DNA of 64,000 nt from Lytechinus pictus (GCF_037042905.1 NW_026974140.1:9610001-9674000); one strand, 5' to 3'; positions 8,201-61,284 are shown, counted from the first letter of the stretch. Numbers and translations: made by a program. Notes: generated by a model from the sequence alone, not told the origin.

Positions 8201-8560
8201 ACTAAACAGCCGTTAGTCTAAATTGATAGTAGACTAAATAGGTTTAGCCCTACCTGAGAAGAAGACTAAGTGAGTCTAGACCTCTCACAGGATGATATTC
8301 AATATACATGTACATGTAACCCTGGAAAAATAAAAATAAATGCAAAGCTGAGCAGTTTCTCAAAGAGATATGAATTCTTGCTGCTCATAGCATTGGGAAA
8401 TATTCATGTGCCAACCTCTAACCAAATGCTTCTGAAACGAAGGTTCGATGGGTCGTAATCTTTTGCATCAATGTCAGGTTGATGAAGGGCCATCATATTA
8501 AATATCATTGTAATAATGGAAGTTTGAGCCTTTTATTATAAAAGGAATATTGCTAGGGGT

Positions 8561-14269: not shown

Positions 14270-17200
14270 CTGTTGGTAAGGGAGAGGGGAAATAAACATG
14301 AAGACCGTTGTTGTTGTTTATGTGGGTGATATTATCATTATCAACTTTAGGTCAATGGAGAAAAAAAATAATCACAATACAATGTACTTACTCAGGAAAT
14401 AAGCATGGCTTATGCCATTCAAACTTCAAGTAAAGTATTGAAAAAAGAAAACGCCAAAACTAAAAATGAAACCAATATTTTACTTTGTGAATTATCTCAA
14501 CATGACAGTTTGTCTTAAGAGCTCACTGTTGAAATTGCTCATACTGAAGAAAAATCATAAAAATAAACGAAAATGATCAATATTTCATTCAATCTTCAGA
14601 CACCATTGACATCCCTTCTAATTCATTGGGATGCCACAAGCATTGGTAATAACAACTAGGAATACATGTATCACTGAAGGTGATTATTACTCAGCTCTAT
14701 CAGGAAGGCTTGATATGGGGAACATATATGAATGCCTTGACTGGGATTTGAACCCGGGACCCCGACTTTGGTGACCCAGGGAGCGTTTCATTAACATTTG
14801 TCATCCGACAAGTTTTCAGATCTGACAACTTTCCATGGGTTTGACTGGCTAAGAGGCACTAGTGTTAGACTTTTACTGTGGAAAACTGACAAAGAAGATC
14901 AGAGTTTGTTGGATAAAACATCCCAAGAGTTCTAACATGTAATGTTCCCTGATGTTCTACCAACTGGGCTGTATGCATCTGGGCTCCCACAGAGATGCCA
15001 ACCTGATCAAGAACATTTCAGTATTTTAAAGGCTGAAAATCAGTATTTTCACAGAAATACCAGAGGACAACACATACACGGAAACTTTTATAGAAATCAG
15101 TTATTTGCATGAAACTACCAGTAATCTTTCTCATTTTAGAAACAATTACTGGAAACAATTACTGGAAACCAGTACTACTCGGCAGCTCTGCTCCCATCAT
15201 TGATGCAATGTAATAAATGTGAACAGGCACGGCAAAACCCACAAAAAGTCGCACTGTGTGATTTTTAATCGGAGGACATCAAAAGTATTTGTTTAATTTT
15301 TATTTCATAGAAAGGGTATTTTTTTCTACATTATCAAAATAATGGATGTACTAACAACCCATAAAAGGTTGTTTTGACACTTTAATTCCACCAATATTTG
15401 TCTTTTTTGTATCACCTTGCAATCTGAAAGTCAAACTATTTCCCTAATGTTGAACATCAAAAGACATAAGATAACCTCTTGCATTGATACATGTACCTCT
15501 CTATTATTACAAACAGGATGTGCTTAACCAAAGTGACAACTTTTGAACAAATTTGATGACCCCGTCTAGGGAAAATTCAATGAGTTCTAATCCCCTTATT
15601 GTCACCTTTGGACAATAGTTTGAAGGTAATTATGCTTCATTGGACTAATCGACTTTAATCCCTATTTTCTCAAAACTCTCATTCTGTGGTAAACACAGTG
15701 AACATTCTTTTCTTAGTAATGGGTCCCATTTCACAAAGACTTGTTCTAATAATAAATGCACAATTTATATAACAAGTTCACTATCAGCCAATCAAATCAG
15801 ATGATTTCAGTAGCTTATAATTGTTATTGTTTAAACAACTAATATGAAATCTGGCTTTAGGGTACCGAAACACATTAGCGATTAATATTACGCTTGATTT
15901 GTACAACTGATTGTATATTGTTAAACATAGATTAGCGATTAAGTGTACGTTATATTTTTACAATTGATTGTACATTGTATACAGTCAATGGAATCATTTG
16001 TAGAAAAAAATTCTACGATCATTGCTAAGCTTTGTGTTACAGTTACGGGCCACTGGTCATAATAAGAAGTGGATCTTACCTCTTCATCTTCAAGTTCTTC
16101 TCCTGGATCCACAGTGTCCTCTACCATCTCTGATGTGGGATCTTGCTGTTTGTGCCAGGCTAGACTCAATGAATCCCCCTTGAACTGATAACCTTTAGCT
16201 ACAGCCTGAAAAGAAGAGGTAAATGGGGGGGGGGGGGGGGGGAGATCATATGTATATTTAGTCTGCAATGTGTAAAATCTTCTGATGACATCTTAGATTT
16301 ACAATCCATTTCAACTTATAATACATGGTGGGTGTTTCATAAAGCTGTTCATAAGATATGAATGACTGTACGCACGACTGGTGATCCTTTCTTGTGCTAT
16401 GAGATATTCCTATATGATTGATTTATGACCTAAGAACATGTTCCAGTCATGCATAATTTTACAAACAGCTTTATAAAACACCCACATGGATAATCACAGC
16501 CAATATGCAAAAATAATGCAAATTCTTCCATTTCAGCATCTCTCCTTTTTAGCTTATTTACAACAAATGTTCTTCAATTTTATATGTAGATGTCATGTTT
16601 GATAATTGTTAATACTAAAACTTGTCATAGTTTTTTTTTCATTTTAAATCTAATTAATTACTCATACATGATATACATGCAAACTTGGGGTCAAGAATGA
16701 AGATTCTCCTGTATTTTTGCATTTTACATTTCAAATATATTTCCATATTTATTTTTCCCTCGTACATAATCAAATGCAAAATTCAGCATTCACACTTCCA
16801 ATACCCAGGAAGGAATTCAAACTTATCTGTGAATTGGAGATTGTACAAAGCAAGCATACTATTGTAATGGCCAAAGTGCATTCATGATATTCTAGTAATG
16901 AGATAACAAACTAATGGACTTTGTACTATGGTACACTTAATCTTCTTTTTTTTTTCTACAAACAGTATAAACTTTGTAGTAAGACTCCATTTATTTGCTC
17001 AGATATATGTCTTCTTTGAATAAAAGTTCAGGTGGAACCCCCGTAATAGTGATACACAGAAACATAGTTATGAGATAAGTACAAATTCTTTTTAAAGGGG
17101 AATCCAACCCAAATGAAAACATGTTTTTATAAGGAAAAGAAAAATCAGACAAGTTGATAGGTGAAAGTTGAACAATATTGGACAAACAACAAGAAAGTTA

Positions 17201-20200: not shown

Positions 20201-23200
20201 CGTCTTTATCCTCAGGTGCAAAACCCCCAACTACGAGACCTCTTGGTCTCTTGTCCACCACTTTGTGTGTAGTGGAGCTCCGTCTCCTGGCTGCGACGAA
20301 GGCACTTCCACGACCCCGTCCACGACCTCGGACTGACCTTGGGTTGCCACGCCCCCTGCTTCCACCAGCGTTGTCTAAGAGACCTAGGGCTTGGGCCTGG
20401 AAAATTGAAAATATTAATATTTTATGATAAACTGAGACTTAGAGTTATATATGAATGATTAAGACATTAATAGAGAGAATAAATAAAATGTACCGTCCCT
20501 TCAACTTTAAACTTCCATTTAAATTAAGAACTAGGTAAGCTCTTGCATTGGGTTTTGTTCCTAACAATCAAAAGGATATGCTTAATTGGTGTGCCAAATT
20601 TGGGGTGATATATTGAATCCATCTAGGAAAACTTTATTGATTTTTAGTGACATTCTCACAATGGTCTGATAGTGGAGGTGTCTTTCAATGGACTGGCCAA
20701 TCTCAATCCCTCATTCATCATAAGTAGTATTCTATGGTAGTAAGCATTCTGCACTTTGTCTCTGTGTAAAAAGGGTTAGGATAAGTCTAATTGTAGCAAG
20801 TTAGTCATATCGCATGGGCCTAAGGCAGGAAATTCACAATTCCCTGTAGAAACAGACGCGATGCGGTTTATAGATAAACCGCACCGCGCAAAACACGGTT
20901 TCACATAACCAACTCTGGGAGGTGGTTATTGCCGTGTTAATCCGTTTTGAATGCGAGTTAATCGGATTATTCGCTCTGTAGAAACAGGTTGGTTTAAGGG
21001 CGGTACGGTTTTTTGATTCCGGAAAAGGTAAACCTTTTTTAACAATTCTCTGTAGACGTCGAATGTGTTGAGCTATAAGGAGGACAGTGAGCATTTAAAA
21101 ATTGATAGTTCTTACCTCTCTTCTCAGCTCATCGACTCTCTTTCTTAGCTCTGAGGTATCCCCTCCCTCTGATTGTTGATTGTAGAGGTCCAACTCAGTG
21201 TCTAGAAGCTCCCTCTCAGCCTGGCAGAAAAGACAAAGGAAACAATCACACATATAGTGGGCGCATCGTGGTCTAGTGGTTCTGACACTCGCCTTTCAAA
21301 CAGAGGGTCGTGGGTTCGAATCCTAGCCATGGCGTGTTTTCCTTCAAGAAATATATCCACACTGCTGCACTCGACCCAGGTGAGGTAAATGGGTACCGGC
21401 AGGAAGTAATTCCTCAAAAAGCTGTGCGCACCGGAATCGGTAGACTAGCTTATAGCCAAGGTAATATAGGAGCACCTTGAGCACTTAGCAAGGTGGATAC
21501 ATGCGCTATACAAATCCTATATTATTTTATATTATTATATTTAGAGAAGGATGGGTGATGAAATCTTCTCAAACTCATGGATCCTAGTAGGATCAATGCT
21601 AAAAATCTATGTTCCTTTTAAAAGAGTACACTACAAAATGTACAGGCATGCAGTCTAACAGTTAATGCACTTGTATTAACTATAAGAACTATCAAATTCA
21701 TAGATTTATAGTTATTTCAGCTGGCACTGATTGTACTGAATTCACAACATACAATACATCAGGGGAAAAATACTTTTTTTTTACAGGAGCCATTTTTCTC
21801 ACTGGTCACAAATTTATAGGAGCCATTTTTCAATTTCAAAGAGCCATGTTTTAATTTGCTAGAGCCATTTTTAAAATAAAAAAAGGAAACATCATTTGTA
21901 ATTATTATCATTTTAGACATGTTAAATTTGAAGCATTGTTTGTTGTATTTTAATGTGCCATCCGTACTATTACTTTATTTCTTTTACCAACAAAAGTAAT
22001 GATTGCAATAATGCCATTTGATTTAATGTGCCATCTCTACTATTTTTTTTACTACTAAAAGTAGGCCCTAATGAATGATTTACTTAGATATATATTGCCA
22101 TTTGTCTTTATTCAGTGCTATTGTAGAAAAATCTGATTATCAAATTTTTAATGTGGCTTTGTGAGTGATCCTGAAACTTTGAAAGAAGAGATAAAGAGAG
22201 GTTACTATACAACTGTAAAATAATACATGAAAGGCTGGTATTCAGTATGTTTTGTACAGTATCCAATAGAATAGAGTACACTTCTCATGGATTTTGATTA
22301 GTAAATAAGCATAATTTGGTGTGCAGTTTCCTTAGGAACAAATGCTTAATGCTCATAATAAATGAAGAACATGGTATGCCTCATAGCTGAATGCTTTTTC
22401 ACGTGACTAGAGCCTGAAATGAACTGATCACCAAAGCTCACAACTACCCCTTTCCGATGGGGACTGGAGCGAGCAGCATACGCACGACAGGCCTGGCAGT
22501 AGACCAAAAGCTTCAGTCTGTGTATTTTGGTTGTTCCGCTGAACTGCGTTGGCTCACTCACCATTACATAGACTGAAGATCTTGGAGGCCTGTACGTAGA
22601 CAACGTATTAGCAGTAACGTTAGATCTAATATTTGGAAACCCGATTTTCCGATCGTTTTTTGTACATAAAATGTCACATTATGAACAAGAAATTACATCC
22701 ATATTTACGAAAAAATGTATAAAGTTCAGAAGTATAGTACCTTAGACCGCAGTTACCGCTAATTCCTTTCAAATGATATCGAAACACCGTCATCTTCGAT
22801 CCTTTTGTTGGTCAACGTAAGTTGCCATCTTGGCTGACGTCATCATCCTTACAGACGTATTTACCAGTCGCTATATATTGCGATTTGTGCCGCTGCTTTG
22901 CGCTTGTAATCTACGTGCGTGCGTTCGGAACTTGTCGCTTGCATTGATTCGCCAGGATATCGAAAATTCTAATCGGAAAGCCTTGATAAAAAGCACACCT
23001 CATTGATCATTGAGGGCAGCAACACACGGCTGCCATTTTTTCATCTACCGTACGTACCGTACTAGTGCGCTCACTGCGCTGAGCTTTGTGAATGTGAATG
23101 GTACATTACGTGCACGTTATAACCTACGCACAAAGGGAAGACAGCGGACGTATGGCCGAGCTAGTTACTGTACACAAGATCACGGGAGCAATTTTTTCCC

Positions 23201-26200
23201 CGATCGCTCTCTCTATTGGGTTTGCAAGTGCGATTTCAAAGCTTACAAGAGCGAAATCGCTCAGTGCTCCCGTGTATTTTTTTCCCTGCAATACATATCC
23301 TCAAAGGAGGGATAATTTTTTAAAAATCAGGTTTAAAACAAAGATATAAAATTAGAGTCCGATGTTTCCATTCACTTACATGTCCCGCATTCAGTCTTCA
23401 CTTGAAAAAAATTGGACAGAATTATATTATTATATATTAGTGTAACCATGTAAAATGTAGCATTTTGTATCAAACTAAGGAACCCTCCATGTCTATCATT
23501 TGACTCATATAAACTAAGGCTTATGTTTATTAAAGAGTGATTTTTTTTAAATAAAAACTTGAAAAAAATCAATTATAAAAACGTTTATAATCTTAAAGTA
23601 AAATATTTCTTAGTTTCCAAAGTGCAAAACATTCATGACTTGTTTTTATACAGTAAACGATGCTCTCACCTGTTTCTTATCCTTTGGTTTTGGCTTTGCA
23701 TCCATAAGTTCTTTCTTGGTCTTCTCTATATTCTCAGATAACATCTTAATTGACTTCATGATTTCAGCTCTTTTCAAGGTTGTTATGGTCGACTTCCCCT
23801 GCTCTAACTTTGCAATCAGGATCTAATTAGAGAATGGGGGGGGGGGATGACATATACAAAATTATTCAAAATATGAACAATTTTAGTCTAAAAAAACAAG
23901 ATACTAATAATGGAATATTTCTATTTACAAACACATGTAATCACAACTCCATCCGCATAATATGATGCCATGTGCTGCACTCGACCCAGGTGAGGTGAAT
24001 GGGTACCCGGTAGGAAGAAATTCCTCAAATGCTTGAGCGCCCGATCAAGGTAGCCATGCTTAAGCCGGGGTAATAATAACATAATAATGTTAAGCAGGGC
24101 CCGCTGGGAGAAGATTTCAGAACTGAAGTGGCTACCCTGGGGAAAATATAACATTATAATTGTTATTTGGGTCATAGACATAGAGTACAAAAAAGTGACA
24201 CTATAAAAAAGAGATTTGGCATTTCATTTTTTTTTTTAATTCAGAGGGTCAATAAGGTATTCATGTGGTCATATCTCAGGCCCCTTGAAACAATCCAAAC
24301 AATTTGAGCTGTGGATGTGGATAAAACAGTGTGAAATACAAAATATGTTTTTTGTATGGTGTCACACTTCAGTACTCTATTGTATTTTCATCTACTTTGA
24401 AAATTTATTGAACAAACATAAGAATGCATCAATCATCTTTTGTCATGTTGAAAATGGAATAAATGATATTTCATCTATATAGAGCGATTTAGCAATACAT
24501 TAAAAACGCGTATTTTGGTCTGCATCAATTGCCTGTGCAGTATCAGAGCGTATCCCTAGAATAACCGAAATCCGAAGATTATCTCGTAAGCTCCTGTACA
24601 AAATTTGCTATTGAAGATGAGAGCATATTCAACAGTATACATGTAGTGCGCATGCGCGAATGCGTGAAATATACAACGCGTACAACAATGAAATTAATGC
24701 GATGCGCAGCATAAGAGCACTATGACACTCAATTACGTCATAATGAACTACATGCAACTCGCATGTCAACGACCAAATTTGATCTTATGAAGTGTTGATG
24801 CCATTATGTGATAAGTGGATATGACTTGTTCAATCAAATTTCTCTCTCTTTTTTATTGCTAGGGGTGGGATAGATGATAATAATTATATTGGATGTCTTA
24901 ATTTCATGGAATACCAGAAATATTCCACTCGTTAAGAGCCAATAATCCACTCATCTGCGATTCGTGGAATATTTGCCCAAACTCTTGGAATATATCTGGT
25001 ATTCCATTCAGAGCCATCCAATATAATATAATTATTATTTCATCAGCCTTTGCACTTTCCTTCATCATACAACTTGAACTTTTGAACCCAAGAGGCCTGG
25101 CAGTCTTAATTAGGACATGGTCATCTATCCGATTGTGAATTGCATTCCTACTTGTTTACAGATTCTGCCTTTACAGATAACTCATTGTTGATTTCATCCT
25201 GTAATCTACACTTTTGCCAGCTCAAAACTATCCCCAACACCTGCTTTATGTACATTTCACCAAGTGTTTCAGTGTAATATACATCCAGTGAAATTTATTG
25301 GTACCCAATAGGATACTTGACTTACATCTGTCTCCTTGTGTAGATAATACTATATAATTTGCTGGGGATGGTATTTGCTCTGAATAATCCAAAATGGAGT
25401 CCCATAGCATTTACCATTGTGCAATATGTGATATGCACTTTTCTTTTCCAATCTGTTCTTAAATATGTTTTCTAAAATATTCATATGAAAATTAATCTAA
25501 TGCAATTAATGATACAAATACAACCGTTTGTGTCTACTCTGTCTAATAAGGACACCAATTTATTTACAAAATGAATTATGGATAGAATTCCTTTATAGTG
25601 GTTCTGTGTAAATTAGTCTTAACTTATGAGGTAATTATCTTACGTTTTATGTTAATCATCAGATGTTTTGAGCTTTTGAAACTTTTCCTCTTATTATTTT
25701 GTATTCTATTCTATACATGTACATGTAATTTCTGGTATGTAAAACTTACTGTATTTTTTTTAAATCTACAACTTTAGCTCTTGGTGAATTATTACCCCCC
25801 CCCCCCCGATCAGGTTTACGATAATTTTTTTCTTCATTATTTGAACCGTTTTAAATTGCTCTAAAAATTTAATTTAAAACACATATGAAAACAAAATACA
25901 TTACCTTTTGCTGCTGGATGAACCCATTCATCAGCTCTTGCTTCTGTTTCTGGATCTCCATCTGCTTCTTGGCTACAAGCTTCTTAGCCTCCTCCTGCTT
26001 CTTCCTCACTGCCTCCTGGGCTGCGGCAAGCTTCCTGGCCACCGAGGCCGAAGTGTGGGCCGCTGCGGCCTTCTTGGCGTTGGCCAGGTTGTTCTGGACA
26101 GTGACCAGTCTTTGGTTGATGGCCACCGCCTTGGTGTTTATGATCGTCTTGGTCAAGGTGGAGTTGCTGGGTTGGACGACCACCTGAGACAGTTAGATGG

Positions 26201-29200
26201 AGAGATTTATTTTCATTTATTATTTATTTACTTACTTATTTAATTATATTAATTTATTCATTCAGTAATACATATTTATTTATTTATACAATTACTTATT
26301 CATAATTTATTTATTGATTTATCTATTTATTTATTCATTTAATTATTTATAAATTTACTTATTTATTCATTCATTTATCTATCTTTCACTTATCTATATA
26401 TATATTTATTTTTTCATTTATTTATCCATTCATTTATTTATTTATTTATCTTTTACCTAATTATCTAATTTCATTTCCAGGAATTACATTGACACTTATA
26501 ACAATAGCAAATTTAATTAAATTGTTAATAATTATCAATACAATATTCAAAATGAAATATCAGAAGACAAAGAAAATACACACACAAAGAAAGTGAAAAT
26601 AACACTGCCCAAAGCCTGGTAATTTTCAAAGGAAATCAAGTTTCTGTTAAAAGACTCCTCATTAGCTGGTGATAAAAAGAGAATGTTTAATATTGACAAT
26701 GAATAATCTGTGACAAGATTAATTTGTTATTAAAGGGGCATAATCCAGAATTCAATCTATTTGTAAGGGAATGATATCAATAAAATATATTTATATTGAA
26801 GTTATAGTAATGGGAACTCAAATATATTTGTTCAAAAGGGGTAAAAGTTGAAGAAATAGAGACTACATTATCACGAAAAAGTTGAAATGATTGGAAAGAC
26901 TTTTGACCCAACTTATTTCCATGGGTTTCAATGAAATTAGATGTTATTTATTGAAATGATACACTAAGCAATATCATGTCAATACCAAATCATGTCCATC
27001 CAACAAAAAGTCGAGTTCAATAAATAGGGGAACACAATAAGCTTTACACTGAAAATTCATTAATATTGGATATAGAATGAGCCCGAATCACAATGAATTT
27101 CTGTTTCCTGATAAATCTTCAAGTCTCCAATCTTTGAGACCAAAAATGCAATACCCTGCAAATCCCAAAGCGGTCAGGATCCGCACTGGCACTGCTGACC
27201 GATCCTGATCAGCCTAGTGACTGACAACCCTACCACGCTCTGTGAGCATCTTGGCTTACGACACGAAAGACATGTAGGAGTTGTATGTGTATCCAATGAT
27301 CATGGCCACATGACCAATCAGAGACGTTCCTTTGTATGGCGTATAATATATATAAACAATAATGTACCCTTGTTCTTGACAAGCAGACTGTGTGGAAAGC
27401 ACAGACACACGTTGATTTACAAGGGAGTATGGTATTTAATCTAAGCAGTCTATTGAACACAAAAGCACTCATTAAGTCAGAATACCTCTTTTGTGTTTGC
27501 TGCTTAAGTTATGATCTAAATAAAAGTATGACAATTCAAAAAATTGTTTCAGATTCATCCATTTATTGATCCATATTAAAATATAGAAATTTGCCCTCCA
27601 CTGGCAGTGCATACGTGTACACAGAATATGAATAAAATCTCAAGACAAATATATGTCATGCATGTTAAACATTAAAGCAATACATTAAGTTGAAGTCAGC
27701 TTTAAATTGGAGCCAATGATGAAACTACGTTAATACAATCTTGAATAAAATTCGTTTTTATTCCTACATGGAGCAATAGATTGAAAATTTAGATTTTAGT
27801 ATTAATACCATATTTCATAACTTTAATCTTTAAGATTTAATAGGGCTTGGATGCTCTTACATGTACCAAATGATATTGATCATTCCAAATCCTGATCACA
27901 AACACATCGCGTAGACAATATATCAAGAGAATGAGAGGAAGGAAAATTTGAGAGAAGGAAAGAAGACACCTCTTACTTTATCTGATGGAGCAGGATGATT
28001 CCTAACAACAGTCAGCTGCTTTTTGGTAGGTAATTGTATTCGGTGCTTGGCAGGTTTTCTGGTATGTTGATTTGGCTCATTCTCTCCTGTTGTGTTCTAA
28101 AAAATAAAAAATAAAATAAAATCAATTTTGCAGAATTTATGTGACAGCACATAAAAAGTAAAGGAACTGATGCTATCATTGAAGAACTGGATAGCACTTG
28201 TAAAAAGAAAAAAAAGCAAGGGAAATGATATGGGTAGTCAAAATTCAACAATCTGTGAAATAATTTCAAATAAATATTTCTTAAATCTAACAGTGGAGAT
28301 AAAAAGATGTTTGGTGGCACAGAATTTGAGAACAACACAGAAAACAGATATACATGTACAGTTGAGGCAAGAAGTTTACATACACCCAGGAAATTCAAAG
28401 AAAAGTTGACACTTGCCAAACATCATAAAGTTTGCTTTATCTTATAAAATATTTGTGCTATCATGACGAATTTGATATCAAACGAATGAGTATGTCATGC
28501 CCTTTCATCACATTGCTTTGTCATCAGGAGCTGAAAAATATTTAGGTGTCATTTTCCCCAAAAATTTTTTCAAATTTTAGACAAATAAAAACTAAAAACT
28601 TAAAACCTAATTACTTCTCAACACAAACATTTCAGATTACACTTTTTTGTTCAGTGGTGACATATCATGACAGAAAATGTAATATAAATCATAGATTTGA
28701 CATTTATATATTTCTATGCAATGATGTTTGAAAATATTTAACAAATAGAATACATTTGGCACGAATATTACTTTTTTCTTCAAAGGAAATTCCACCTGAA
28801 ATATACTTTAATCCCAACAGCATCCCAAATATGTGAAAGAGCTTACTATGCTCTTTCATTTGATACCAAATTAGTCATGGTCGTATTTATGTTAATAATA
28901 ATAATATAGGTATATTTACCCAGGAAACCAATTCAGTTCTGAAAACTGTTCTCCCAGTGGGCCCTGTAATTATCATATTTCTGAAGATATAGTAAATTTT
29001 ACGATGTTTGGCAAGAGAACAAATTCCACTGAATTCATGGGTGTATGTAAACTTTTGGCCTCAACTGTACTTATTTTATGTGATGTGCACTTATCAGTAT
29101 GGTGCAAAAATGAATGGAAGTGGTATCTCTTGTGCCTTGCTTCCAATAATTAAAAACAATTATTTATAGGCCTTGAGCACTTTATACAGTGCATACGGCA

Positions 29201-32200
29201 CTTTTTAAGTCACATTATTATCATACTCCGATAGGAGCACACCGCAAAGCTCTGTAGGTCTATTTTCTGCGCAATTTCCAATGGAGATGATATAAATAAT
29301 GCAAAATGTAATTCTACCTCGGGAGGGATATGCCAAAAGACCTTGACAAAGCGATTGTTGAAGACTGCCTCTGTGGACTGGTAAGCTTTCTTGGCCTCTA
29401 AATGAGTTGAGAAGGTGACCAACGCTGCTTCTAAATCCTGAGCATATGCAATCTGAAAAATAGAAAGTGAAGTGTTGATTATTTACTTTAATTGTAGTAT
29501 TTAGCAATGTTAGAATGAGAACAACATCAATCAAAATTCAAAGATACTGCAAATGCAAAATGGCCATGAAACCTGGTTGATGTTTCATAAAGCTGTTTGT
29601 ACGTTACAAGCAACTTTATTAACAACTGGTGATCTTTACTTGTAGTAAATGTTACACACCAAATTTTAATTGATGTTGATTTGGCGCTCAAGAAGGGATC
29701 AAGAGTCGTTCATAAAGTTGCTTATAACTTTATACGACAGCGTTATGAAACATCCACTTGGATTCATATTCATAAGATATGGCAACATAATCTGAAACAT
29801 GGAATGCCAAGTTACTCACGACACATACCTGTAGATTAACAATATTGCCAAACTTGCTGAAGTGCTCGTTGAGCTTGGTGATATTGTTGCAGTCCTTGGG
29901 TATCTTGCGCACCTCCAGGATCCTGTTGTTTGGCACAAATCTTCCCTTCCCCTTCCCTCCAATCCTTGCCCTGAGATCAACTGCACCACCAAAACCGGTG
30001 CCAGGTCCGCCAGTACTCTGGTTGAAAGGCCTCTTCAGTGGATAACCCATGGCGCTGTCATCACTCTTCACCACAGCTCGTCTCTGCTCCTCTTGGACAC
30101 CATCATCTTTTTGGCCCATGGTGAGATCGATAACCTTCCTTTCACTTTGGCCTTCATCAGAGGAATCCTTGTTCGTCAGGGCGCCTATCTCTTCCAATTC
30201 TGTAAGGTTCAAAGGAGTGGTAGAAAGATGGGAGACAAGGGTATGTAATGGTCAAGTTCTCCCAATAAAATGTTGCTTTGGATAAAATGAACAATATCAA
30301 CAGACGTCATTCTGAAAATTTTCATCATAAAGCTAAGATATAGGATGTAAATTTGCATAGGAAAATTCATTTGAAGATGATGACCATTTACTTACCGACA
30401 ACTTTTAGCACTTTGCAAAGTCCCGGTATATTTAGTGTTATAGAAGTTCCCTTTATATATTTGCGGTCTCAAGTTTTGTATGGGCCGGCAACCAAAAACT
30501 TGAACAGCTCAAAATATGGTGTCAATGATACGCTGTAATCTTAAGAGACTGGGCTAGACAACTATGTTAGAACTCACGGTAGATGACATCTCCTTTGAAA
30601 TTGTGGGGTTTTTTTTATAATGAAGGAACATTGCTTTAACACTGGGTGACCCCATCCGCATTTAAACTTTTTGACCACGGATCATCAGTTTGCATCCACC
30701 TGTACTGACCGCACAGAAACGTTGTTAGAGCTAACAATGTGCTAACAGAGGCCCTGTTACAACTGGTAATGTGGCAGCGATGCCTAATGATACAACAATG
30801 CACTACTTACACAATGAAGTAAATAATTTGACTTCACAATCCAAAAGATGTGACTGAGCTTACTGTTAGTGCTTTGTTAGGCTAACAATGTTTCTGTGCA
30901 GTCGGCACTGGTCTACAAGCAGATGGTCTAATTCAATTCTCAGTTTTTCTGGAACCATGAAGGCAAAATCCACTTGGTCCACTAGCAATTTGGTCCAACC
31001 ACCACTTGGTCTAACTGTCCTTTTATGCCCAGATGGTCTAATTTCCATGTTGTCCGCCTATTATTCTGCACTTTCTCAAATGAAAACTTGGTTCACAAAC
31101 AGTTCTTCTAATCATATAGAATAAGTGGTGTAGGAAAAAGAGGATGTTAGCTGAAATGGGTAAAGCCACCCCCATAGTCAAGGACTAAACCGTATTTAAA
31201 ACCTTGGTGACTGACCACATTAACTAGAATTTATATGAAGTGGTAAACAAGCAATTTGGCGATCAGACCATAAGGTGAGTAGGAAAACTGGTTGTAGGAA
31301 CTACAGGTAGGATAAGACCATGTGGGATCAGACCATGTGGGATCAGACCAAATGGAAAGTAAACAAAGTGGTTTTACACCAAGCAGCCTTTTACCAACTC
31401 ACCTTCCCTCGTGGTTGTAGGGACCGTTTGGATGCCTACTAAGGTTCTTAGGTTTGATGAGGCCTGCCTTGGTGCTCGGTTGCCCCCAAAGTAATCTACC
31501 TGAGCCTCCATGCTAGGGTCTTCGGGGTTGTACCCTTCCATCTGGAAATCTGAGGGATGACAAAATGAAGGAGTTCAGTAACAAAACCAGGGGGTGTTTC
31601 ACAAAAACTTAACTTCGAGTCGCACTTAAATGTCAGCTGCGTGCAGTATATAACGCAACACCTCACTGGTCAGATCATGTGTACGGTACATGAACTATCG
31701 CTGATATCTAGCTATCAGATTACGCGTTAAATGAAATGTTAATGCACATTGGTGGTTAAGCAGGGCCCTGGGCAACCGAAAATGAGAGTCGGGCCACCAA
31801 AATCTGTAAAAGCCCACACTCCCAAAGGCTCCCAAAGTTTTGATAAATTGTTATGTTTTCTATAATTTTAGGGCCACCAAAAATATGAAATTGATGATTT
31901 TGATGGACTAATCGGGCCACCAAGAAAAAAAGTTGGTGTAGAGCCGTGGGTTAAGCATGACCCTGAGTCACACTTAACTTTTTGTGAACACCCCCCCATC
32001 CGGTGGGTGTTTCATAAAGCTGTTTGTAAGTTACAAATGACTATATGTTAGGCTGGTGGCCCTTTCTGGTGCTAAATGTAAATGACAGACCTGCCAACCT
32101 TCTACAAAAAAAAGTATTCTTAGAAGGAAAAAAAAGAGTATTTTTAAAAATTTGTCTCAACGGAACATTCACCAGCCTGTTGTAGTGAGATCGGTGAAAA

Positions 32201-35200
32201 AACATGTGAAATGACTCTACATGACAACTTGATAATTCATCATTTTAAACATGTGCTCGTTGGCAAAAATTTACTTGTTCTTTTTATGCAACAAGTTACT
32301 GGCCCGACAGTGATTTTTACCGGTCTGGGAATTTCAGACTGGCGCTAGTGCCGCGCGCTGTGTATAATACATACTCCATGATTGGAAATTTGAAAAAAAA
32401 AGTAACAAATCATATAAAAAAGTATTTGGTGTATTCATAGCAAAAAAGAGAAACAAATACTCTAAAAAAGGAAACGGTTAGCATGTCTGATATGATGTAT
32501 CCCTGTATAGCTGACAAAGTACATGACTACATGTTCAAGTCGAGCATAAAGTTTTACATAACTTTAAGAATGACTATATGCATGACCTTTGACCTTTTGT
32601 GCTACAGTACATGTATGTCTTATATCCCTGTGTAGCTGACTTAGTACCTAATAACATGTTCCAGACGTGTGTTAAAATACCCAACGGTAACATCATGAAA
32701 TTGGTTACATAAAAAGACCAATGATGCTAAATGTGATATACCATTTCCAATATCAAAATAGGTTAAATTCTGTTACAAAATCTATATCCACATTATTTGA
32801 ATACAGAAATAATAATTCAAATGAAACAACAATGTACCCTTGTTCTTGACAAGCCGACTGTGTGAAAAGCACAGACACAAGTTGATTTACAAGGGAGTAT
32901 ATGGTATTTAATCTAGCAGTCTATTGAACACAGAAGCACTCATAAAGTCAGAATGCCACTTTTGTGTTTGCTGCTGACACCTGCCCTAGTCATCAATTCC
33001 CAATATTCTTATGTATTTCTTTTTTTTACTGCTTTTCAATAGAATATGTTGGCGACTTTATTCTGATCATTAACAACAAGAAATTGAATATAAGATAGTA
33101 ACAGTAAAAATAATGATTAACTTCTGAATATTGGCTCTGAAAAACTCAATCTGCATTGAATTTGTACATTTGTAATTCATGTTTTCGAAAGTGTTGCATG
33201 ATGAAAATTCTCAAATATTAGGGATTAATTGTAAAAAATGCACCCCTCTCATCTGAGTATTAGGATCAATGCTCACCTTGAGAAGATGCATAATTCTTAG
33301 TTTCTGATGGTGGTGGAGGGGGACTGCATTCCCTAGGAGGTGAAGATGGAGGTTGAGGCACTGGAAGCAAGAGAAAAACACTCATATTTCAGACAAGTCA
33401 TTTGAGTGCATAATCATGAAGAAAACTATCGCTATGTTGGTTCTTGTTGTTGTTAAGATGAATCTTATCATGTTGCACTTTCACTGTAGTTTACAATAAC
33501 AAACAGTATTGCTCCTATTAAACTTTGCACCTCTAAACGTAAAGTTCTGAGGGAAGTTGGGAAAAATACTGATTTTAGAGTTATGATATAAAAGTTCTCT
33601 ACAGGAATTAGGAGACTGTTTTAAGAATATATGAGATTTCCACCACTGCCATCTTTATAAAATTACAGCTTTTTCTGAACTGCCCTCATTATTTTCCCCA
33701 TTTATTTATACAAGGTTTTAACAGCCCATTCATGATATGGTCTATTGCAACGGTAGATACAAATCACAGTTCTGTCACGTTACTTCAGCACTCTAAAAAT
33801 CATATGAAATGGGTAGATTCTGACAGTTATTGACTGACCTGGTGGTGGTATAGTAGCATCTGGTGCAGGAGGTAGAGGAGGAGGGGGTCTGTTCATCTGA
33901 AGAGGCATCGGGGGAAGAGGTGGTCCTCCAGTCGGGGGTGGTGGTATCCTCATGTGTGGGGGCAACCCTGGAGGGGGTCCAGGGGGCGGTCCGTTGGGCC
34001 TCAGTGGTCCATGCATCCTTCCAGGGGGAAGAAGAGGCACACCTCTTGGTGGGGGGGGCAAGGGTATCCCAGTAGTGGGTGGAAACCCAGGCGGGGGCAT
34101 GTTGAAGGGGGGTAGAAGGGGTGGAGGGGGCTGAGAAGGGGGTAACGGGGGTAGAGGAGGTTGTGGGGCAGGGGGTATTGAAGGCACTGGTGGTCGGGCA
34201 TCCATGTTTGGAGGCGGTCTGAACATGTCTATATCCTCCACGACTACAGGGTCGTTGCCATGATCGTATGGACAAAATTCTCCTTTCATGCAAAAACCCT
34301 TTTCTGTAGAATAAATATATATCAGAATGGGAAATTGTTACTCTATAATTACATAATGAAATCCACTTTTTCAATATAGTTGCTTTTATGTCTTCATGAC
34401 TTTACACTGTATTATGCAAATAAAACATAATAGAAAAAACAATCAACAATGACTTCCCATTTTTTATTGACACGGTTTGCAGACCAACATTTTTTACTAT
34501 TTCATTCTATACATTATTCTAGTCACATAATATACAAATTCTAGCAAAGTTACATACAAAATTTACTTGCATGAAACTAGATATAAAGCATTCGACTTTC
34601 AAAATCTGTTAAATTACAGATTACAATAAATTCCTAACTTCCATAAATCCCCTCCACTACGAAATCACTGCTAAAATCACTAACCATCATAATCTCTACA
34701 TCTCTGTCGTATCCTCTGAACAGGTTGTTCTCCCTGCTTGGATGAACCCTGCACAGGTTCAGGTCCATCGTTGGACACTACAGTGATGACGCTGCTGATT
34801 GCAGATGGTTTAGCGCTATTTTCTTTCAACCGATCATCGCGGTCTCGATCTAGGTCCCTGTCACGATTTCTTCCGCGATCATCATACCTGCCGGAGTCTG
34901 AAAGATTGGAAAAATCACAAAACTGGTAATTAACCAGTTATTTTCTTTGCGATTGATCGTTATAGCCTCACGCAAGGTCATTTTCCTTCACAATCACCAT
35001 ATGCAATGGAATGTAAAAGAATGGGAAAATCATGGGACTGGTAACCAACCAGTTATTTTCTTCGCGATCGGTCATTATTATGTTAACTTCAGTCATCCCA
35101 AATAAAATCTTACTTTTTGCAAAGATATATGAATCAAGCCATACAACGATTTCATTACAGACTACAATATCAATAATTCATGAATTCTTTACACCCAGCG

Positions 35201-38200
35201 AGAGCACAGTAAGGATTTGTTTACTAGTAATGTACATGGATGTATGTTGAATTTCTAAGATTACACAATAATATTTCGGTTGATCTTCCTACCTCTTCCA
35301 TCGCGCCCTCTCATACGATCTCTTTCCCGGTCTCTGTCTCGATCTCTGAAATCTCTATCCCTGTTACGCTCCCTATCCCTATCTCTATCCCTGTCTCCAT
35401 ACCGGCGAGGGCCGTAGCGATCCAACCGATCATCTCTCCTCCTTCGGTCATCATCTCTTCTCCTTCTCCTGCAATGACAACGAAGACGTCAAAGGCAAAG
35501 AGTGTAAGGATCAAGAAATAGATTTATTTATTTCCATTCAACAAAATAAACAAATATAATCAATGTAATAGTACATATATTCAATACAATGTAGACAGTT
35601 CAATAACGTTTTATAACAAATATGGAAGATAAGGAGGGACTTGCCAAGAAAGCAATGCTTGTATAAAAGGCAAGTCCCCAAACTTAGTTTCAATACTAAT
35701 TATCAAAGCTATATACAATAATGGAGATGGTAAAAACAAGTAATCTACAAAGACAAATCAAAATAAAGCAACTACAAAAAATAAGAGAAGACCCCGAGAC
35801 GCCAACGAGTGTGGACGCATGCAACCCAGCTGCTCCTCACCCGGCGCCAAGGTCTACAACCTGTAGAAGCATCGTAGCTGTTATATTATTATAGATCTAC
35901 CTGTTTTCTACCGTGTGGCATCATTAATGCAAGTGTCAGGTGAGTATAAGTTGTTGTCACTGTTTCATTCCGTGAGTAAGTACCGTAAGTAACGGTCTAT
36001 TAACCGCACCTTTTTCTCGGCGGGATAGAAGCAAAAGTCGGGGGTGCGGTTTATCCACGGTGACGGGTCTGAGCCCGCCCGCGTAACCCCTCCCGAACAT
36101 GTAAGACGTCTGCCAGTTCACAGCACATCGAGTGGCCGGGCGTAGCCGCCCAGGACAATGTCGTTTAGAGGGGTATGAGCCGCGGGTAATGGGAAGCGAT
36201 TATTACGATCTTAATCAAATATTGTCCATAACAAACGCACCCACCTTCATGACACTAATTTCGACTTTATTCTCGATTCATAGCAGCGAAGTTCCTTGGC
36301 TAAGTTCAAAGAGACGCCAAGCATTCTCGGTTATAATTTGTCATAGCTAGCTGACCGAGAGCCGATAGCTTGCGTTGTATTGTGGTTATAGTGCGACTCA
36401 AGCTGGCGCTATTCATTTTAACCCCTCTCCAAAGTCCCGTTTCGCGCCAGCTTATTTTTTCTTTCCTGTTTGCTTTTCATAAGATACCATGTACACCGTG
36501 CACCACGCACAAGAGAGACGGCACGAAGCCGTAAAACAACTGGAAAAAATGCAAATTTCTTTGTTTCTTGAACCTTCCGTAATCCCGTATCCAAAATTCA
36601 TGCTAAGACATCGAATGCTAGACAAATTCTGAAAGTGATTGTGAGGTTGTGATGCAAGAAATGTGATCACAATTTGATAAGATGTACTGGTAAGTGGTAC
36701 CGTATCGTAGTTTGCAATGTACAAAAACGGCAGTGCTGTGTGTGTGTACACTGTGACTGTGAGGTGAGTGAGTGTGTAAGTGGCCAATATTGTCGGGACC
36801 TTTCTTTCTTGCTAACATTTGTAGATTAATTGATCAAGAACAGCAGATTTCCACATATCGGTAATCTCTTTAATACTTTGAAATCTTTAACTTAGTTTTT
36901 GTTTCTTCGTACCTCAAATATGCATGTAAATGTGAGAAGGATTTTTTTTTTTTTTTTTTTTTTAAAGTCCAAAGTTGGGGGTGTGGTTAATACACGGGTG
37001 CGGTTTATAGTCCGTTACTTACGGTATCCATATTTAAACCACAACTTCTGACCAGGGTCTGTCCTCCATGACATACATGTTCTGTACATGCATTCTGCGA
37101 TAGATATTTAGCATGAAAAGAATATTTCATGAGTTTCTTCTTTCAAGTCCTGCACAACTATTAAAAGCAAAATTTTAATAGCAAATCTGGATAAATAGGG
37201 TTAAATTAAACCCAGGTTCACAATTTGTTTATTACAAGTACCTTGGGCTGTAACTTCTGCTCCTACTCCTGTTCTTGGGTGAGTGGCTCCTGGACTTGCT
37301 CCTTGAATGTGACCTGGAGTGTCTCCTGCTGCTCCGCCGATGATCCCTCTCATCATTCTCTACAGTCTGGAATGAAATGCAAACATGTTGTTTTTATTTT
37401 GATGTTATTGATGTTATGTTTGTCCCCCCCTCCCCCATCATAGCCTTTACTTTTAAGGGTTGTCTTACCATTTGGTTACAATGCACTGTATATTAAACAT
37501 TTTCACTATTTCACATGGTTGAATAAAACTTAAATTAATGTTGACATGGTGAAGTTGATAAATAAATAGTAAAACAGTATTTAATAAATATTCTTGAAAA
37601 TAGCACTATCGAGAAAGCTCACCAAGTGGATGTCATCTTTTTTTTTTTTTTTGAGGGGGAGGGGAGGGGGTGTTTGTTTCATTGTATACGCATACCTAAC
37701 TCACATCCAGAAACCCTAGAAAGTTACATCAATCATAAAACCCATGGATATTTCCCATTTTCTAATTTTTCCTTTTATGTTGATGAAAATATCAATATAA
37801 TATAAGGTTTCCATAGCTTTTTATGAAACACTTACTTAGCACTGGGCAAAAAATACAATAAGATCTTTGGTCCTCTTTAATCGTAATGATGACAAGAATG
37901 TTCAAACAAAAATCATATGGCAAGGTTTCCAAAAGGGACATAAATGCCGAGAATAGAAGGTAACAGTAATGCCTTTTTACAATTAGAAGGGATATGTGTG
38001 ATTATGAAAGATGAAGAGCCCATGGGGAGATGGGGGGGGGGGGGTGCAGCGGATTGTCACGCTCGTTGCTGTTGGTGGTATGGTACTTCCGCTGTTTGAG
38101 ATTTTGGGAAAATCCAGGGGCTCTTGCTCATGTACTTAACATACATGTATATTTGACTTCTTCAAGAAGGTTTAATCCAACAGCCCATTTCAGGAGCTAC

Positions 38201-41200
38201 CAATGGCCCTTTTCAGGGCCACCAAAGATTCAAGAAAGATAGCGTCCTATAGTATGGTAATAAATGACTACCACATAATAAAATAATTTATTAAAAATAA
38301 ATCAAATCCAATAGTAACATGTACATGTAAATAGAAACAAAAAACAAAGCAAATACATGTAGTTTATTTCTATAATTATTTTATTACAATTCATATGCAC
38401 ATACATACACTTGTACATACCCTTTCTTGTTATACAATACAATTGTTTAAAAAATCAAAATGGCTGCCAACCTGTCTATAGTGGCCACTTTCGCTGCTTC
38501 CCTTGAGTGTCCACTATAGACAGGTTTGACTGTAGTTATTACATCACTATATTTGCATGTATTCTGCCTTCTTCTCATTTAATGAAAATTGTATTGTGTT
38601 TCATGATTCCATAATAAAACACATGCGCATACACACAAATATATTGTTGTCTGCAGAATCAACTATTTTTCAAAACTTGCTCACCACATCTCTATTGGAG
38701 CTCCTTGACCGAACCTCTTCTTTGGTTGACGTTTCAACAACAACAGCACTGGTCGGTAAGTCGCCACCACCAGGAGCCGCTGCCGCAGGCTGTAATGGTG
38801 GATCTTGTTTGCCGCCCTCTACTGCTGTAATATTGGCACTTCCCCCTGGAATGTAAGACTTTGTGGCAAGAGCGACAAAAAGGTCATCTACGAAGGACTG
38901 GGTTTCTGCAAAAAAACAGCACAAAATGGATGTAAAATTGCATTGTCAGTAATTAATGGCACATTGAACATTCACTTTCACAGATGTGTACATGCAATAA
39001 CAAACACAATATCTTGACAAATATGGGGAATTTCAGCAGAAGGACAATCTAAGATTGGAATGAAATATAAAAACTCTTTAAAGGACCTGAGCCTCAACTC
39101 GAACAGTGTTTTATTTTGACCTGTAGAATAAAATCATACAAGTAGCTGCACAATCTTGGAGATAAAATTCTTGTATTCTTTACTTGATATTCAGTTACAA
39201 TTAAGTAATTACCTTACAGAAATTACATCCTTTACATGCACTGTAACTTTCTTCAAAATCATTACTTGAAAAGGTGGGTTGTGGTAGTAGCAGTTAGTTT
39301 GAAAAAATAAGAATGTACATTGTTGATGACTTGTATTGGCCAATGTTGTGGTTAAGAATGTAAAACTGCTGGTGCCATAACCTCATCTCAGACCTGCAAC
39401 AGCTGTACTTGCATGAAAAGTCCTGTAGGGTAATTACCTTTACTATACATGCAATGCAGATGTGATGTTCCATCTCTATATTTTCAGCCAATCTGATTTT
39501 TCTTTCAGTTCATGGGTGCAAAATCTTACACTTAAAGGTCAAGTCACCCCATAAAAAGGTTGATTTGTACCAATATAAAAAACAAGCATAAAGCTGAAAA
39601 TTTTATCAAAATCGGATGTAAAATAAGAAAGTTATGACATAAAGCTTCACTTATTTTTCACAAAACAATTATATGCACATAAAGTGAAATGCAAACAAGA
39701 TTCGATGATGTCCCTCACGATTTGTTTAATTTTTTATAACTAGTTTGAATTAAAGAATATTTTAAGTTTTACCCATTTGACAGCAAGGACCATCTTCACT
39801 GAAAATGTTAAAACAGTAATTCAACATGTTCAGGGAGGAATAAAACTTTGTTTCACAGGACAATGAGGAGAAAATTAGAATACTTCATATAATAAAATAC
39901 GGAAGAAATAGTCAGTGGACGACACCATCAATCCCTTCATTTGCATACTGACCAGAATTGGCATATAACTAGTAATTATAAATGGCAACAATGCTGGCTA
40001 TACTATCATGGAAGCTCTACTAGTAGTACATTGTGTAAAAAACATACCATTTACAAGAAAGACACCAAGCTGATCAATGCATGTAGCCCTCAGCTCATCT
40101 GCGCTTTTATCCTTCTTCGCCAACGCCACTACATACTTGGCTAAGGCATTAGGGTCCGCATCACAGCTGTTGGAGATAAAATATTACACATGTATGTGTT
40201 AAAATCATGACAATTATTGCACTGGTTCACATGATTAAACTGCTTTATCTTCCCTTTTTTTCCGCACAATCGTGTTCAAACTTCCCCTTAAAATGAAAAA
40301 TTGTACTGTTCCAAGTTTTAATCCCTAATGATGTTAACGTTATACACTAAGGCCCGTATTCTGAAGTCGGGTTTAACTTAAACTCAGGTTTAAAGTTATG
40401 GTTTAAGTATGGATAGCCAATTGTTATATAAATCACTAACGGTAGAGATTTCATATTTCAGCTCATTTGGCTCTCAAATCATTAATAATTGTCTAGGAAG
40501 TATAAATAGATGATTATCTTCACCATCGATGAATCAGGAAAGAGCACAGTAAAAATAAGAAACATACAACTTGAAAAAAATTTGAAACTTTTGGCTTCCC
40601 ATAATTTTAGCACAGAGTTAGACCATGGTCTAAGTTAAACCTGACTTCAGAATACAGGCCTAAGACTGCCTGGACGTATGGTTTTATCATGACTCCTGTT
40701 TGAAGTTTCCAGCCTGAAATGCACAAATGTTGGGCCCATCACAATCGCCAGACAGATCGTGGGAATCAACAACTTAGCTCAGTTGGTTAGAGCGCCTGTT
40801 TCGGATAAGACCATTCAAGATCGACGTTCAGGGGTTCAAGTCCCACTCATGCCGAGAGACATCTTACAAAAACTGATGCTAACATTGTATGTTATTGTGC
40901 CTCACCGGTGCACTCAGTGTACTCTGTCCAATGGAAAGGATGCAAGCATTGCTCACTGTATAGGAAAGTCACAACCTACTGTATATGCACTTTTACTAAA
41001 CCAATACACTGGGTGATTTCAAGTACGGTGTTGAAATCTGGTGTTGGTGTTGTGACAACACCAACACCAGCCACAACACTGTACTTGAAATCAGGCTGGT
41101 GTTGGGATCGACCTCGGAAAATATGACGTATTTCCGGCAGTTCGTGTCGAAGGCTGGTGTTGAATGTTGTCTACTGAACCCAGCACTGCGGCAGGTGTTG

Positions 41201-58607: not shown

Positions 58608-58973
58608 TAATATTATCTAAATTCTCGATCTTAAAGAGAGCGAGGGGTGAGATATGAAGGCATTCATTATCTTGCACATTTCTAATGATATTTTTCATCA
58701 ATAATGTAAGTATTCTGTCCATGAGTGAAAAAGAGGCTTCATATTGTGTCATGAGGCTTCAGGAAGGCATGTGCGTGAAAAGACAGTTCTCATAATATAT
58801 ATATATATATATATACATATAAACTGTTGGAACTAAGTACAATGCATTACCACTTTGCCTCATTAATATATATATATATATATGACGGTATTACATTCCG
58901 CGTGTTGGTCACAGATGAGATAAAAGAGGCAAAGAGGTAATGCATTGTTATAGTTCCAACAAGGTTTATTTCC

Positions 58974-59018
58974 AAGTCCAAATTTTCGACGTAAACCCAC
59001 GTCTTCTTCAGGGATACA
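58974..59018 (-). ncRNA. Minimal type I hammerhead ribozyme motif (Penelope type), core intact
   Basis: UCC-CUGAAGA-A-GACGU(GGGUUU)ACGUC-GAAA-AUUU-GGA. Confidence 0.7.
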
Positions 59019-59663
59019 ATAAAGCTCACAGTGACAAGATATTGAAATAATAGATGCATTCATGATTATGGTAGTCATGGAAACGCGTCACCATCATAAT
59101 GAAAGCATACTTGAGGCGCAGGCTGTAAAGTTTATTGCGTAAGTGAGGACATCATTGTTATGTCATAATCACTTGCTAATGACGCAACCACAATCATGAA
59201 AGTGCATGAAAAGAATAAGATAATGGATAAAGGCCTATATATCATGATTATGACATAACAATGATGTCCTCACGCAATAATATTTACAGCCTGCGCCTCA
59301 AGTATGCTTTCATTATTATTATTTTTTATATTTTTTATTGCAGGAGTTTCTGCATTTTATTTACAAATCAATGATAAATTAACATATTCACATAATACCA
59401 AACATATAAATGAATACAATTTAAATGTGACAATTGAAGAGATACATTGTAAATAATACAGAAAAGACTGATAATTAAAACATACATAAGCATGTGATAT
59501 AATGAGTTCCGTAAAATACAGGGGCCAGCTATTATAAGCACAAAGGTGCTTGAAGCAATAGCATTCATGATGGTGATGCTTTTTTAACCTGCGCGTTTCC
59601 ATGACTACCATAATCATGAATGCATCTATTATTTCAATATCTTGTCACTGTGAGCTTTATTGT

Positions 59664-60678: not shown

Positions 60679-61058
60679 ATTAGGTCCTATCATCAAAAGT
60701 ATAATCACCATATTATTCTCTCTCTGTGTGTGTGTATACAGAGTGAGTCAGAAAAAAATGTCTCATTATATGAAGTTGTCCTGTGTGAAGTATAAACATT
60801 TTATCATTATTGATATGTTCTGATAGCATATTTTGGAACCATTTTCATATCAATCTTTCATGACAAACTACAAGACAATCTCCGTAACATCTCAGTCACG
60901 CCAAGTTGCTGGGGGGGGGGGGTGCAGGGGCAGATCCAAGGGGGGGGGGGAAACCGACTATTATGGTAAGTCTACCATCCAATGGTAACTACCATGGAAA
61001 CAATGCTCATCAGCCAATCAAAATCACGGATTCCATGAAATATACCTTTGGATGGCAA

Positions 61059-61158
61059 ACAGTGCTTGTATAGTGACTGCACTACGAGTGCTGATTGTCT
61101 AGTTCAAATTTAAACTAGAAAATCAGCACTCGTAGTGCAGTCACTATACAAGCACTGT
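61059..61158. repeat. 100-bp near-perfect palindrome
   Basis: ACAGTGCTTGTATAGTGACTGCACTACGAGTGCTGATT..CTAGTT / AACTAG..AATCAGCACTCGTAGTGCAGTCACTATACAAGCACTGT. Confidence 0.92.
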
Positions 61159-61284
61159 AAGTGCTAAATTAGCACTTCATTTTTTACAGAGTAGTAGTTT
61201 TTCTGCAACGGGGGCCCTTTGAGAACAAAACGCTGGAAACCTATTTTTATATTGGCAAAAAGAAGCTGCTGAAAACTGCTTATC

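Follow-up and report, generated by a model that had tools for sequence, protein, structure and literature searches.

A putative intron-encoded box H/ACA snoRNA family in RBM26/27 of echinoderms and hemichordates, with a predicted 28S rRNA target

The RBM26/27 gene of the sea urchin Lytechinus pictus carries, in two of its introns, copies of a sequence that we interpret as paralogous, intron-encoded box H/ACA small nucleolar RNA (snoRNA) genes whose 3' pocket is predicted to guide the modification of U3085 in 28S rRNA; we put the probability of this reading at about 0.8. The gene lies in a 64,000-nt window (the whole stretch of DNA analysed), in whose positions all urchin coordinates are given, with minus denoting the host-gene strand. 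Sequence comparisons indicate that the two copies belong to a genuine H/ACA snoRNA family, so far unlisted but of a well-understood kind, which echinoderms share with hemichordates. The family is absent from Rfam 15, and has therefore been overlooked by homology-based annotation; it comes with a clear target prediction.

Two intronic copies and their fold

The copies, their boxes and their 3'-pocket strands are located as follows.

27360-27506, minus: snoRNA copy A (~147 nt), in an intron flanked by the exon at ~27950-28110 and by the coiled-coil exon at ~25870-26185
27437-27442, minus: H box AGAUUA of copy A (sequence and A/B alignment)
27412-27418, minus: 3'-pocket 5' strand AAAUCAA of copy A (pairs with 28S UUGAUUU; AUCAA and the closing C invariant in 10/10 family members)
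27375-27379, minus: 3'-pocket 3' strand UCAAG of copy A (pairs with 28S CUUGA; starts 14 nt before ACA)
27363-27365, minus: ACA box of copy A (invariant in 10/10 family members)
32830-32977, minus: snoRNA copy B (~148 nt), in the intron between the zinc-finger/proline-rich exon at ~33780-34290 and the exon at ~31400-31560
32909-32914, minus: H box AGAUUA of copy B (sequence and A/B alignment)
32882-32888, minus: 3'-pocket 5' strand AAAUCAA of copy B
32845-32849, minus: 3'-pocket 3' strand UCAAG of copy B
32833-32835, minus: ACA box of copy B (invariant in 10/10 family members)

An initial annotation of the window had described a ~145-nt sequence that occurs twice on the host strand and lacks terminal inverted repeats, target-site duplications and tails. 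Both copies were found, with ~93% identity in alignment, and inspection of the sequence and the alignment revealed no poly(A) tail, target-site duplication or terminal inverted repeat at either of them. The accompanying proposal that similarity ends at the predicted mature ends holds on the 5' side, where it starts within 1-2 nt of (A/C)AGCAGC, but not on the 3' side, where it extends through ACAUU(A/G) and then continues at lower identity for ~20 nt past ACA and its 3-nt tail (UUGUUU(C)AU...); the flanks beyond are unrelated. A repeat search of 26000-34500 found no duplicated unit besides copies A and B, except one transposon fragment. In the whole 812-Mb assembly, the two copies are the sole matches in a BLAST-type DNA search, with which a covariance-model search agrees, so that the sequence occupies just two places and not hundreds. 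The Rfam scan that had been suggested as a check was run on the window with release 15, and no family matches copy A or B, either at gathering scores or at E<=10.

Copies A and B show 11 differences, which belong to loops, to the linker, to one bulge and to weak upper-stem pairs; the boxes, lower stems and pocket strands are free of them. One of these differences is compatible with the structure, as had been pointed out: GGUAUUC in one copy and GGCAUUC in the other both lie opposite GAGUGCU, with a U.G pair replaced by C-G.

Folding gives both copies the layout originally proposed for them (5' hairpin, H box AGAUUA, 3' hairpin, ACA and a 3-nt tail), and comparison across four animal lineages bears it out. 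In the 5' hairpin, a lower stem AGCAG/CUGCU is followed by a lopsided internal loop (CAA opposite UCAAUAGA), the 3' strand of which begins 14 nt upstream of AGAUUA in copy A and 13 nt upstream in copy B, and then by an extended upper stem with hardly an interruption (ACACA.../...UGUGU followed by GG(U/C)AUUC/GAGUGCU); UGAG is found at the edge of the apical loop. The 3' hairpin consists of a lower stem CCCUUGU/ACAAGGG, the pocket strands AAAUCAA and UCAAGA, and an upper stem that is closed by C-G and topped by a 5-bp apical helix and a 7-nt loop; no Cajal-body (CAB) box was found in the 3' loop. The lower stem is followed by one U, ACA and 3 nt. The H box conforms to ANANNA and sits in the hinge, immediately after the first hairpin; the pocket strands match the sequences on either side of the predicted target U, at 14 nt from the box (14-16 nt in this class), and the two-hairpin fold is obtained for both copies. 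The pocket itself (AAAUCAA and UCAAG, the latter starting 14 nt before ACA) is, as reported, identical in the two.

The predicted 28S target and the conservation of the RNA

Targets were sought in the species' own 18S, 5.8S and 28S rRNAs, located in its rDNA, and in the small nuclear RNAs (snRNAs) U1, U2, U5 and U6. At every U, the 3' pocket strand was compared with the 5' flank and the 5' pocket strand with the 3' flank, with two nucleotides left free. The open 3' pocket has one match, 28S U3085 (CUUGA-UC-UUGAUUU), with 5+7 Watson-Crick pairs and no wobble, which is the sole match of such quality in all seven RNAs. One of 1000 shuffled pockets equals this pairing; in a comparison that admits wobble pairs, a match of the same level is reached by 40 of 5000 random pockets. 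The conserved sequence CUUGA-U-C-UUGAUUU, with which the initial annotation had paired the pocket, is present in the species' own 28S, which carries CUUGAUCUUGAUUUUCAG in ~49 rDNA units, and no other scanned sequence matches the pocket as well. No snRNA target was found in U1, U2, U5 or U6, the scan having been made without U4 and the minor-spliceosome snRNAs. For the 5' pocket, to which no target could originally be assigned, none stands out in the rRNA/snRNA scan either. The best candidate, 18S U843, was rejected, because 41 of 300 shuffled pockets do as well or better and the pocket varies between taxa.

In the preferred reading, the snoRNAs would be released from the introns of RBM26/27 pre-mRNA and would assemble with dyskerin, Nop10, Nhp2 and Gar1 into a ribonucleoprotein (RNP). 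The 3'-hairpin pocket would then bind 28S CUUGA-UC-UUGAUUU, with AAAUCAA on the 3' flank and UCAAG on the 5' flank, leaving two nucleotides, U3085 and the C after it, free where the upper stem begins, at 14 nt from ACA; there U3085 would be isomerised to pseudouridine.

A comparison of RBM26/27-orthologous genes together with their introns, which had been proposed as a further check, recovered the same RNA in Amphiura, Saccoglossus and Patiria (coordinates are local to each gene).

Amphiura filiformis RBM26-like gene (L024), 6632-6774, 11236-11379, 14484-14622, 20768-20907 and 22953-23099, sense: five copies; guide pairs (5' + 3' strand) 5(+1)+5
Saccoglossus kowalevskii RBM26-like gene (L027), 6550-6692 and 8239-8384: two copies; guide pairs 6+5
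Patiria miniata RBM26-like gene (L031), 8023-8100, gene strand: one copy (model R1, 48.5 bits, E ~5e-9); guide pairs 7 (one G.U) + 4
Lytechinus pictus, copies A and B as above: guide pairs 7+5

Model R1 is a covariance model of the 3' half, built from the five Amphiura, two Saccoglossus and two urchin copies, without Patiria. In the model-based alignment of ten sequences from the four taxa, AUCAAC, UGUCAA and ACA are invariant in 10/10; ACA follows 1 nt after the lower stem in all ten sequences, and the first 3'-guide nucleotide is 14 nt from ACA in all taxa. As the lower stem itself, the urchin has CCCUUGU/ACAAGGG, Amphiura has UUCCCUG/CAGGGAA, Saccoglossus has UCUUUAU/AUGAAGA and Patiria has CCCUG/CGGGG, and 10 of the 15 stem pairs of the 3' hairpin have changes on both sides. 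Paired cells make up 87% of the alignment, versus 38-56% with slid partners, and the observed covariation was reached in 0 of 500 shuffles. The H box is AUAGUA or AUAGAA in Amphiura, AGAAUA in Saccoglossus and AGAGUA in Patiria. The relatives' RNAs all fold a 5' hairpin, in which a GCA...UGCU lower stem is common but the pocket is not; this fits a structural hairpin, and the 5' hairpin accordingly appears to be an orphan without a guide role.

The five Amphiura copies, the highest number seen, are near-identical and lie in five different introns; their 5' pocket strand is variable and their 3' hairpin almost invariant. Searches with urchin exons (tblastn) place the copies in different introns in different taxa. 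The most similar copies are those within one species, which indicates repeated duplication or conversion inside RBM26/27, and the snoRNA would seem to multiply and move among the introns of this one host gene. In echinoderms and hemichordates alike the host has stayed the same, while the number of copies (1, 2, 2, 5) and the introns that hold them change.

Conservation among sea-urchin relatives was assessed with public sequencing runs aligned to 27200-33100. The introns are covered by a run from a close relative, organism E. From organism D, a more distant sea-urchin relative, only host exons, at ~90% identity, and parts of the snoRNA, at ~91-98%, can be aligned, and the surrounding introns cannot: there are 1-2 differences in 57-60 nt at 27368-27427, identity is ~91-95% at 32869-32930 and 32906-32975, and one contig stops at 32975, the predicted 5' end. 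The organism D run is labelled 'RNA?', but its depth is even over exons and snoRNA; it is therefore treated as probable DNA and used for conservation only.

Outside these groups, model R1 gave nothing below E=1 in seven RBM26/27 genes, among them those of Limulus, Owenia, Tubulanus, Lingula and Nematostella and one teleost RBM27, in a gene set without amphioxus, tunicate, crinoid and sea cucumber. In Rfam, one Saccoglossus copy has only a sub-threshold match to SNORA35 (25 bits). Since copies are found in both echinoderm and hemichordate RBM26/27, the association with this gene dates back, judging from its distribution, at least to the common ancestor of the two groups.

This conservation bears on the idea that the copies have no function and are remnants: a repeat in decay, a snoRNA pseudogene that arose by retroposition, or a piece of a transposon. 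The introns around them are full of repeats, and the ~20 nt of similarity past ACA+3 could be read in the same way, but a repeat of this sort would have to be limited to two genomic copies, to lack a poly(A) tail, target-site duplication and terminal inverted repeat, and to have undergone compensatory conservation in four lineages, always in the same host gene and orientation. The split of these lineages is placed more than 500 million years ago. Such an origin is extremely improbable, and the transposon or retroposon reading was ruled out on copy number, the lack of tails and target-site duplications, and deep conservation with covariation.

Several observations weigh against a snoRNA that guides U3085. 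The minimum-free-energy fold pairs the guide CAA with UUG, closing part of the pocket, and the base of the 3' upper stem is weak, with G.U pairs, U.U mismatches and a bulge. The guide pairing varies between taxa: the Patiria 3' guide is UCAAA (4 bp), and the Amphiura 5' guide has one mismatch. The target is assumed to be present in Amphiura, Saccoglossus and Patiria 28S, given the identity of the human and urchin sequences. A literature search found no pseudouridine mapping of the U3085-equivalent site for any echinoderm. Finally, a 6% sample of an rRNA-depleted run contained ~2 reads inside copy A, in the expected orientation, and none in copy B; host exons were also at zero, so that this run has no power either way. 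A low-depth RNA contig at 32629-32926 extends from intronic sequence into copy B, as expected of pre-mRNA.

Just 5' of copy A, at 27544-27548, there are 12 RNA reads (partial) and a contig depth of ~50, none of which extends into the snoRNA. This signal probably comes from a repeat fragment and not from a precursor extended at its 5' end.

The open-pocket fold costs +1.7 kcal/mol in both copies (-14.4 vs -16.1 and -14.5 vs -16.2), which makes the pocket geometry ambiguous by thermodynamics alone. However, the upper-stem pair beside both guide strands is C-G in 10/10 sequences, and the next is G.U, A-U or a mismatch; taken as comparative evidence, this invariant closing pair settles the geometry as open. 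A genuine H/ACA snoRNA might instead have a different or additional target, either 18S U1755 or an RNA outside the scanned rRNAs and snRNAs. In copy A, pairing of CAA with UUG in the minimum-free-energy fold shortens the pocket, which then forms 5+5 Watson-Crick pairs with 18S U1755 (CUUGA-UC-AUUUA) at the same distance from ACA. However, the UAAAU strand that this pairing requires is not conserved, being AUAU in Amphiura, GGAAU in Patiria and UAUAAU in Saccoglossus, whereas AUCAA, which is required for 28S U3085, is invariant. The 28S pairing is also longer than that with 18S (12 vs 10 bp) and involves a position known to be modified, and the 18S 3' end is not known to have a pseudouridine nearby in yeast or human, which argues against U1755. 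Because the 18S-specific strand is not conserved across taxa, U1755 was set aside as disfavoured, and another target, whether in place of U3085 or beside it, is considered unlikely.

It is also conceivable that the copies are a conserved structured intronic element with another role, such as a small Cajal-body-specific RNA (scaRNA), a regulator of RBM26/27 splicing or processing, or a small-RNA precursor, and that the rRNA complementarity is incidental. UGAG at the edge of the 5' apical loop could be read in favor of this alternative. RBM26/27 proteins are part of the nuclear exosome's PAXT (poly(A) tail exosome targeting) connection, which makes a self-regulatory element imaginable (PMC8860595, PMC11788927). 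On the other hand, the invariant positions are the two pocket strands, the upper-stem closing pair and ACA at 14 nt, and the stems covary freely, which is the signature of a guide RNA. The location of the copies in different introns by taxon argues against a position-specific splicing role, and the missing CAB box and the lack of matches in U1, U2, U5 and U6 argue against a scaRNA. A role of this kind is thus very unlikely, and a snoRNA guiding 28S U3085 is the preferred reading.

The host gene and other elements of the window

The host was identified through the exon that encodes the first half of the RRM, which lies between the two snoRNA-bearing introns.

29829-30199, minus: host exon, first half of RRM; ends taken from a spliced 4444-nt RNA contig and the flanking GT/AG

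A HMMER search of its translation against 1.84 billion proteins gave matches to full-length proteins whose source names are RNA-binding protein 26-like in Amphiura, Saccoglossus, Limulus, Tubulanus, Patiria, Lingula and Nematostella, and RNA-binding protein 27 in sharks and teleosts; the gene models for the matched proteins carry PWI and RRM domains. The assignment of the host to RBM26/27 in the initial annotation is thereby supported at the level of orthology. Single host exons gave only a weak RRM_1 match in Pfam, and neither a PDB sequence search nor an Atlas search was informative for the host. From 5' to 3', the gene comprises the PWI exon (~38.7-38.9 kb), the zinc-finger/proline-rich exon (33.8-34.3 kb), copy B, an exon at ~31.4-31.56 kb, the RRM exon, exons at ~29.3-29.46 kb and ~27.95-28.1 kb, copy A, and the coiled-coil exon (25.9-26.2 kb). 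By this order, both copies lie within introns, in the sense orientation, and are separated by four exons, in agreement with the difference of four between the intron numbers originally given (8 and 12).

A histone-type 3' stem-loop with a purine-rich downstream element was observed inside the RBM26/27-like gene of three taxa.

Lytechinus pictus, 38200-38245, +: histone-type stem-loop, 37 bits; GGCCCUUUUCAGGGCCACCA ... CAAGAAAGA (downstream element 38231-38239)
Saccoglossus, L027:10748-10793, +: histone-type stem-loop, 36.8 bits, sense to the host
Patiria, L031:12133-12178, +: histone-type stem-loop, 26 bits, below threshold, sense to the host

The urchin stem-loop lies antisense to the host within the intron that follows the PWI exon, and there is no histone open reading frame upstream of it; its downstream element CAAGAAAGA fits those of sea-urchin histone genes. 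Two significant matches in orthologous genes of two phyla are unlikely to arise by chance, and a non-polyadenylated short isoform or a nested transcript is one possibility.

Copies of a very abundant short repeat (...GTTTCATAAAGCTGTTTGTA...) are found at 29575-29730 and 32002-32079, with read depths of thousands to hundreds of thousands. The repeat forms a long hairpin, has a spurious match to a plant miRNA (MIR7807, 27.9 bits), and looks like a miniature inverted-repeat transposable element. The sequences at 58825-59316 and 61049-61167 are long inverted repeats, with sub-threshold matches to plant miRNA precursors (MIR4371, 63 bits, both strands; MIR161, 51 bits).

Comparison with SNORA2 and the evolution of the guide

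The initial annotation had equated the target with human 28S U4263, guided by the 5' hairpin of SNORA2 in KANSL2. SNORA2A (ACA2A) guides 28S-4263 and -4282, and its host is KANSL2 (PMC6466398, Table 1). In the Rfam SNORA2/SNORA34 consensus, the 5' hairpin has GAAUcAAG near its start and UCAAg 14 nt before the H box AAAgaA, and the 3' hairpin has UGGUCUGU, which includes the guide GGUCUG; these guides complement UUGAUU(U), CUUGA and ACAGACC. U3085 and U3104 are the urchin 28S uridines that match them, and their spacing of 19 nt equals that of 4263 and 4282. By the guide complements and this spacing, U3085 is the equivalent of human U4263, a known pseudouridine, and the attribution to the 5' hairpin of SNORA2 agrees with both the literature and the consensus.

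The urchin RNA resembles SNORA2/SNORA34 (RF00410) in that it is a predicted box H/ACA RNA, is intron-encoded, and has several copies in one host (as do human ACA2a/b/c in KANSL2), with a pocket for the same 28S uridine and with near-identical guides ((G/A)AAUCAA and UCAAG) at 14 nt from the box. It differs in carrying the guide in the 3' (ACA) hairpin instead of the 5' (H) hairpin, in lacking the GGUCUG guide for U4282, and in its host, RBM26/27 instead of KANSL2. Guidance from a 3' hairpin in a different host gene had been proposed from the outset, and no homology to SNORA2 is detectable: RF00410 (gathering threshold 70 bits) does not match copy A or B in the window even at E<=10. Its single match in the whole genome (28.6 bits) lies in an unrelated place, with no guide and no ACA, and was dismissed as chance. 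The urchin RNA is not a member of SNORA2/SNORA34, and the shared target reflects a common function and is not evidence of membership.

The two candidate urchin KANSL2 loci, which encode the zf-C3Hc3H (KANSL2/INO80D-type) zinc finger, gave no H/ACA match by Rfam, pattern or model R1 in 50 kb. A pattern search of the genome for other hairpins that carry this guide was uninformative, with 1136 matches versus 269 in a control.

The 5' and 3' domains of snoRNAs evolve independently, antisense elements commonly switch between non-homologous guide RNAs, and host synteny erodes with distance (PMC6984369). The evolutionary proposal of the initial annotation is in keeping with these observations, and either host switching or an independent origin may account for the urchin guide. 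A guide for the U4263 site may have arisen or been transplanted independently in the echinoderm-hemichordate and vertebrate lineages, on unrelated backbones, in opposite hairpins and in unrelated hosts, and a second possibility is that residence in RBM26/27 is not accidental, but this combined proposal is improbable. If it is true, snoRNA production could be coupled to the dosage of an RNA-decay factor, given that RBM26/27, the host for half a billion years, belongs to the PAXT pathway, which disposes of snoRNA host transcripts.

A further comparison is offered by yeast snR189, the guide of 25S pseudouridine 2735 in the same helix region, which may act on the equivalent uridine of the large-subunit rRNA or on one next to it. 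Unlike the urchin RNA, snR189 is an independently transcribed gene, and no Rfam similarity between the two was found; a literature search found no paper linking snR189 with SNORA2. The understanding of the H/ACA guide mechanism is unchanged by the urchin family. Set beside SNORA2/SNORA34, it exemplifies a known theme, in which the modified site and the guide strands are fixed and the backbone, the guide hairpin and the host differ by lineage.

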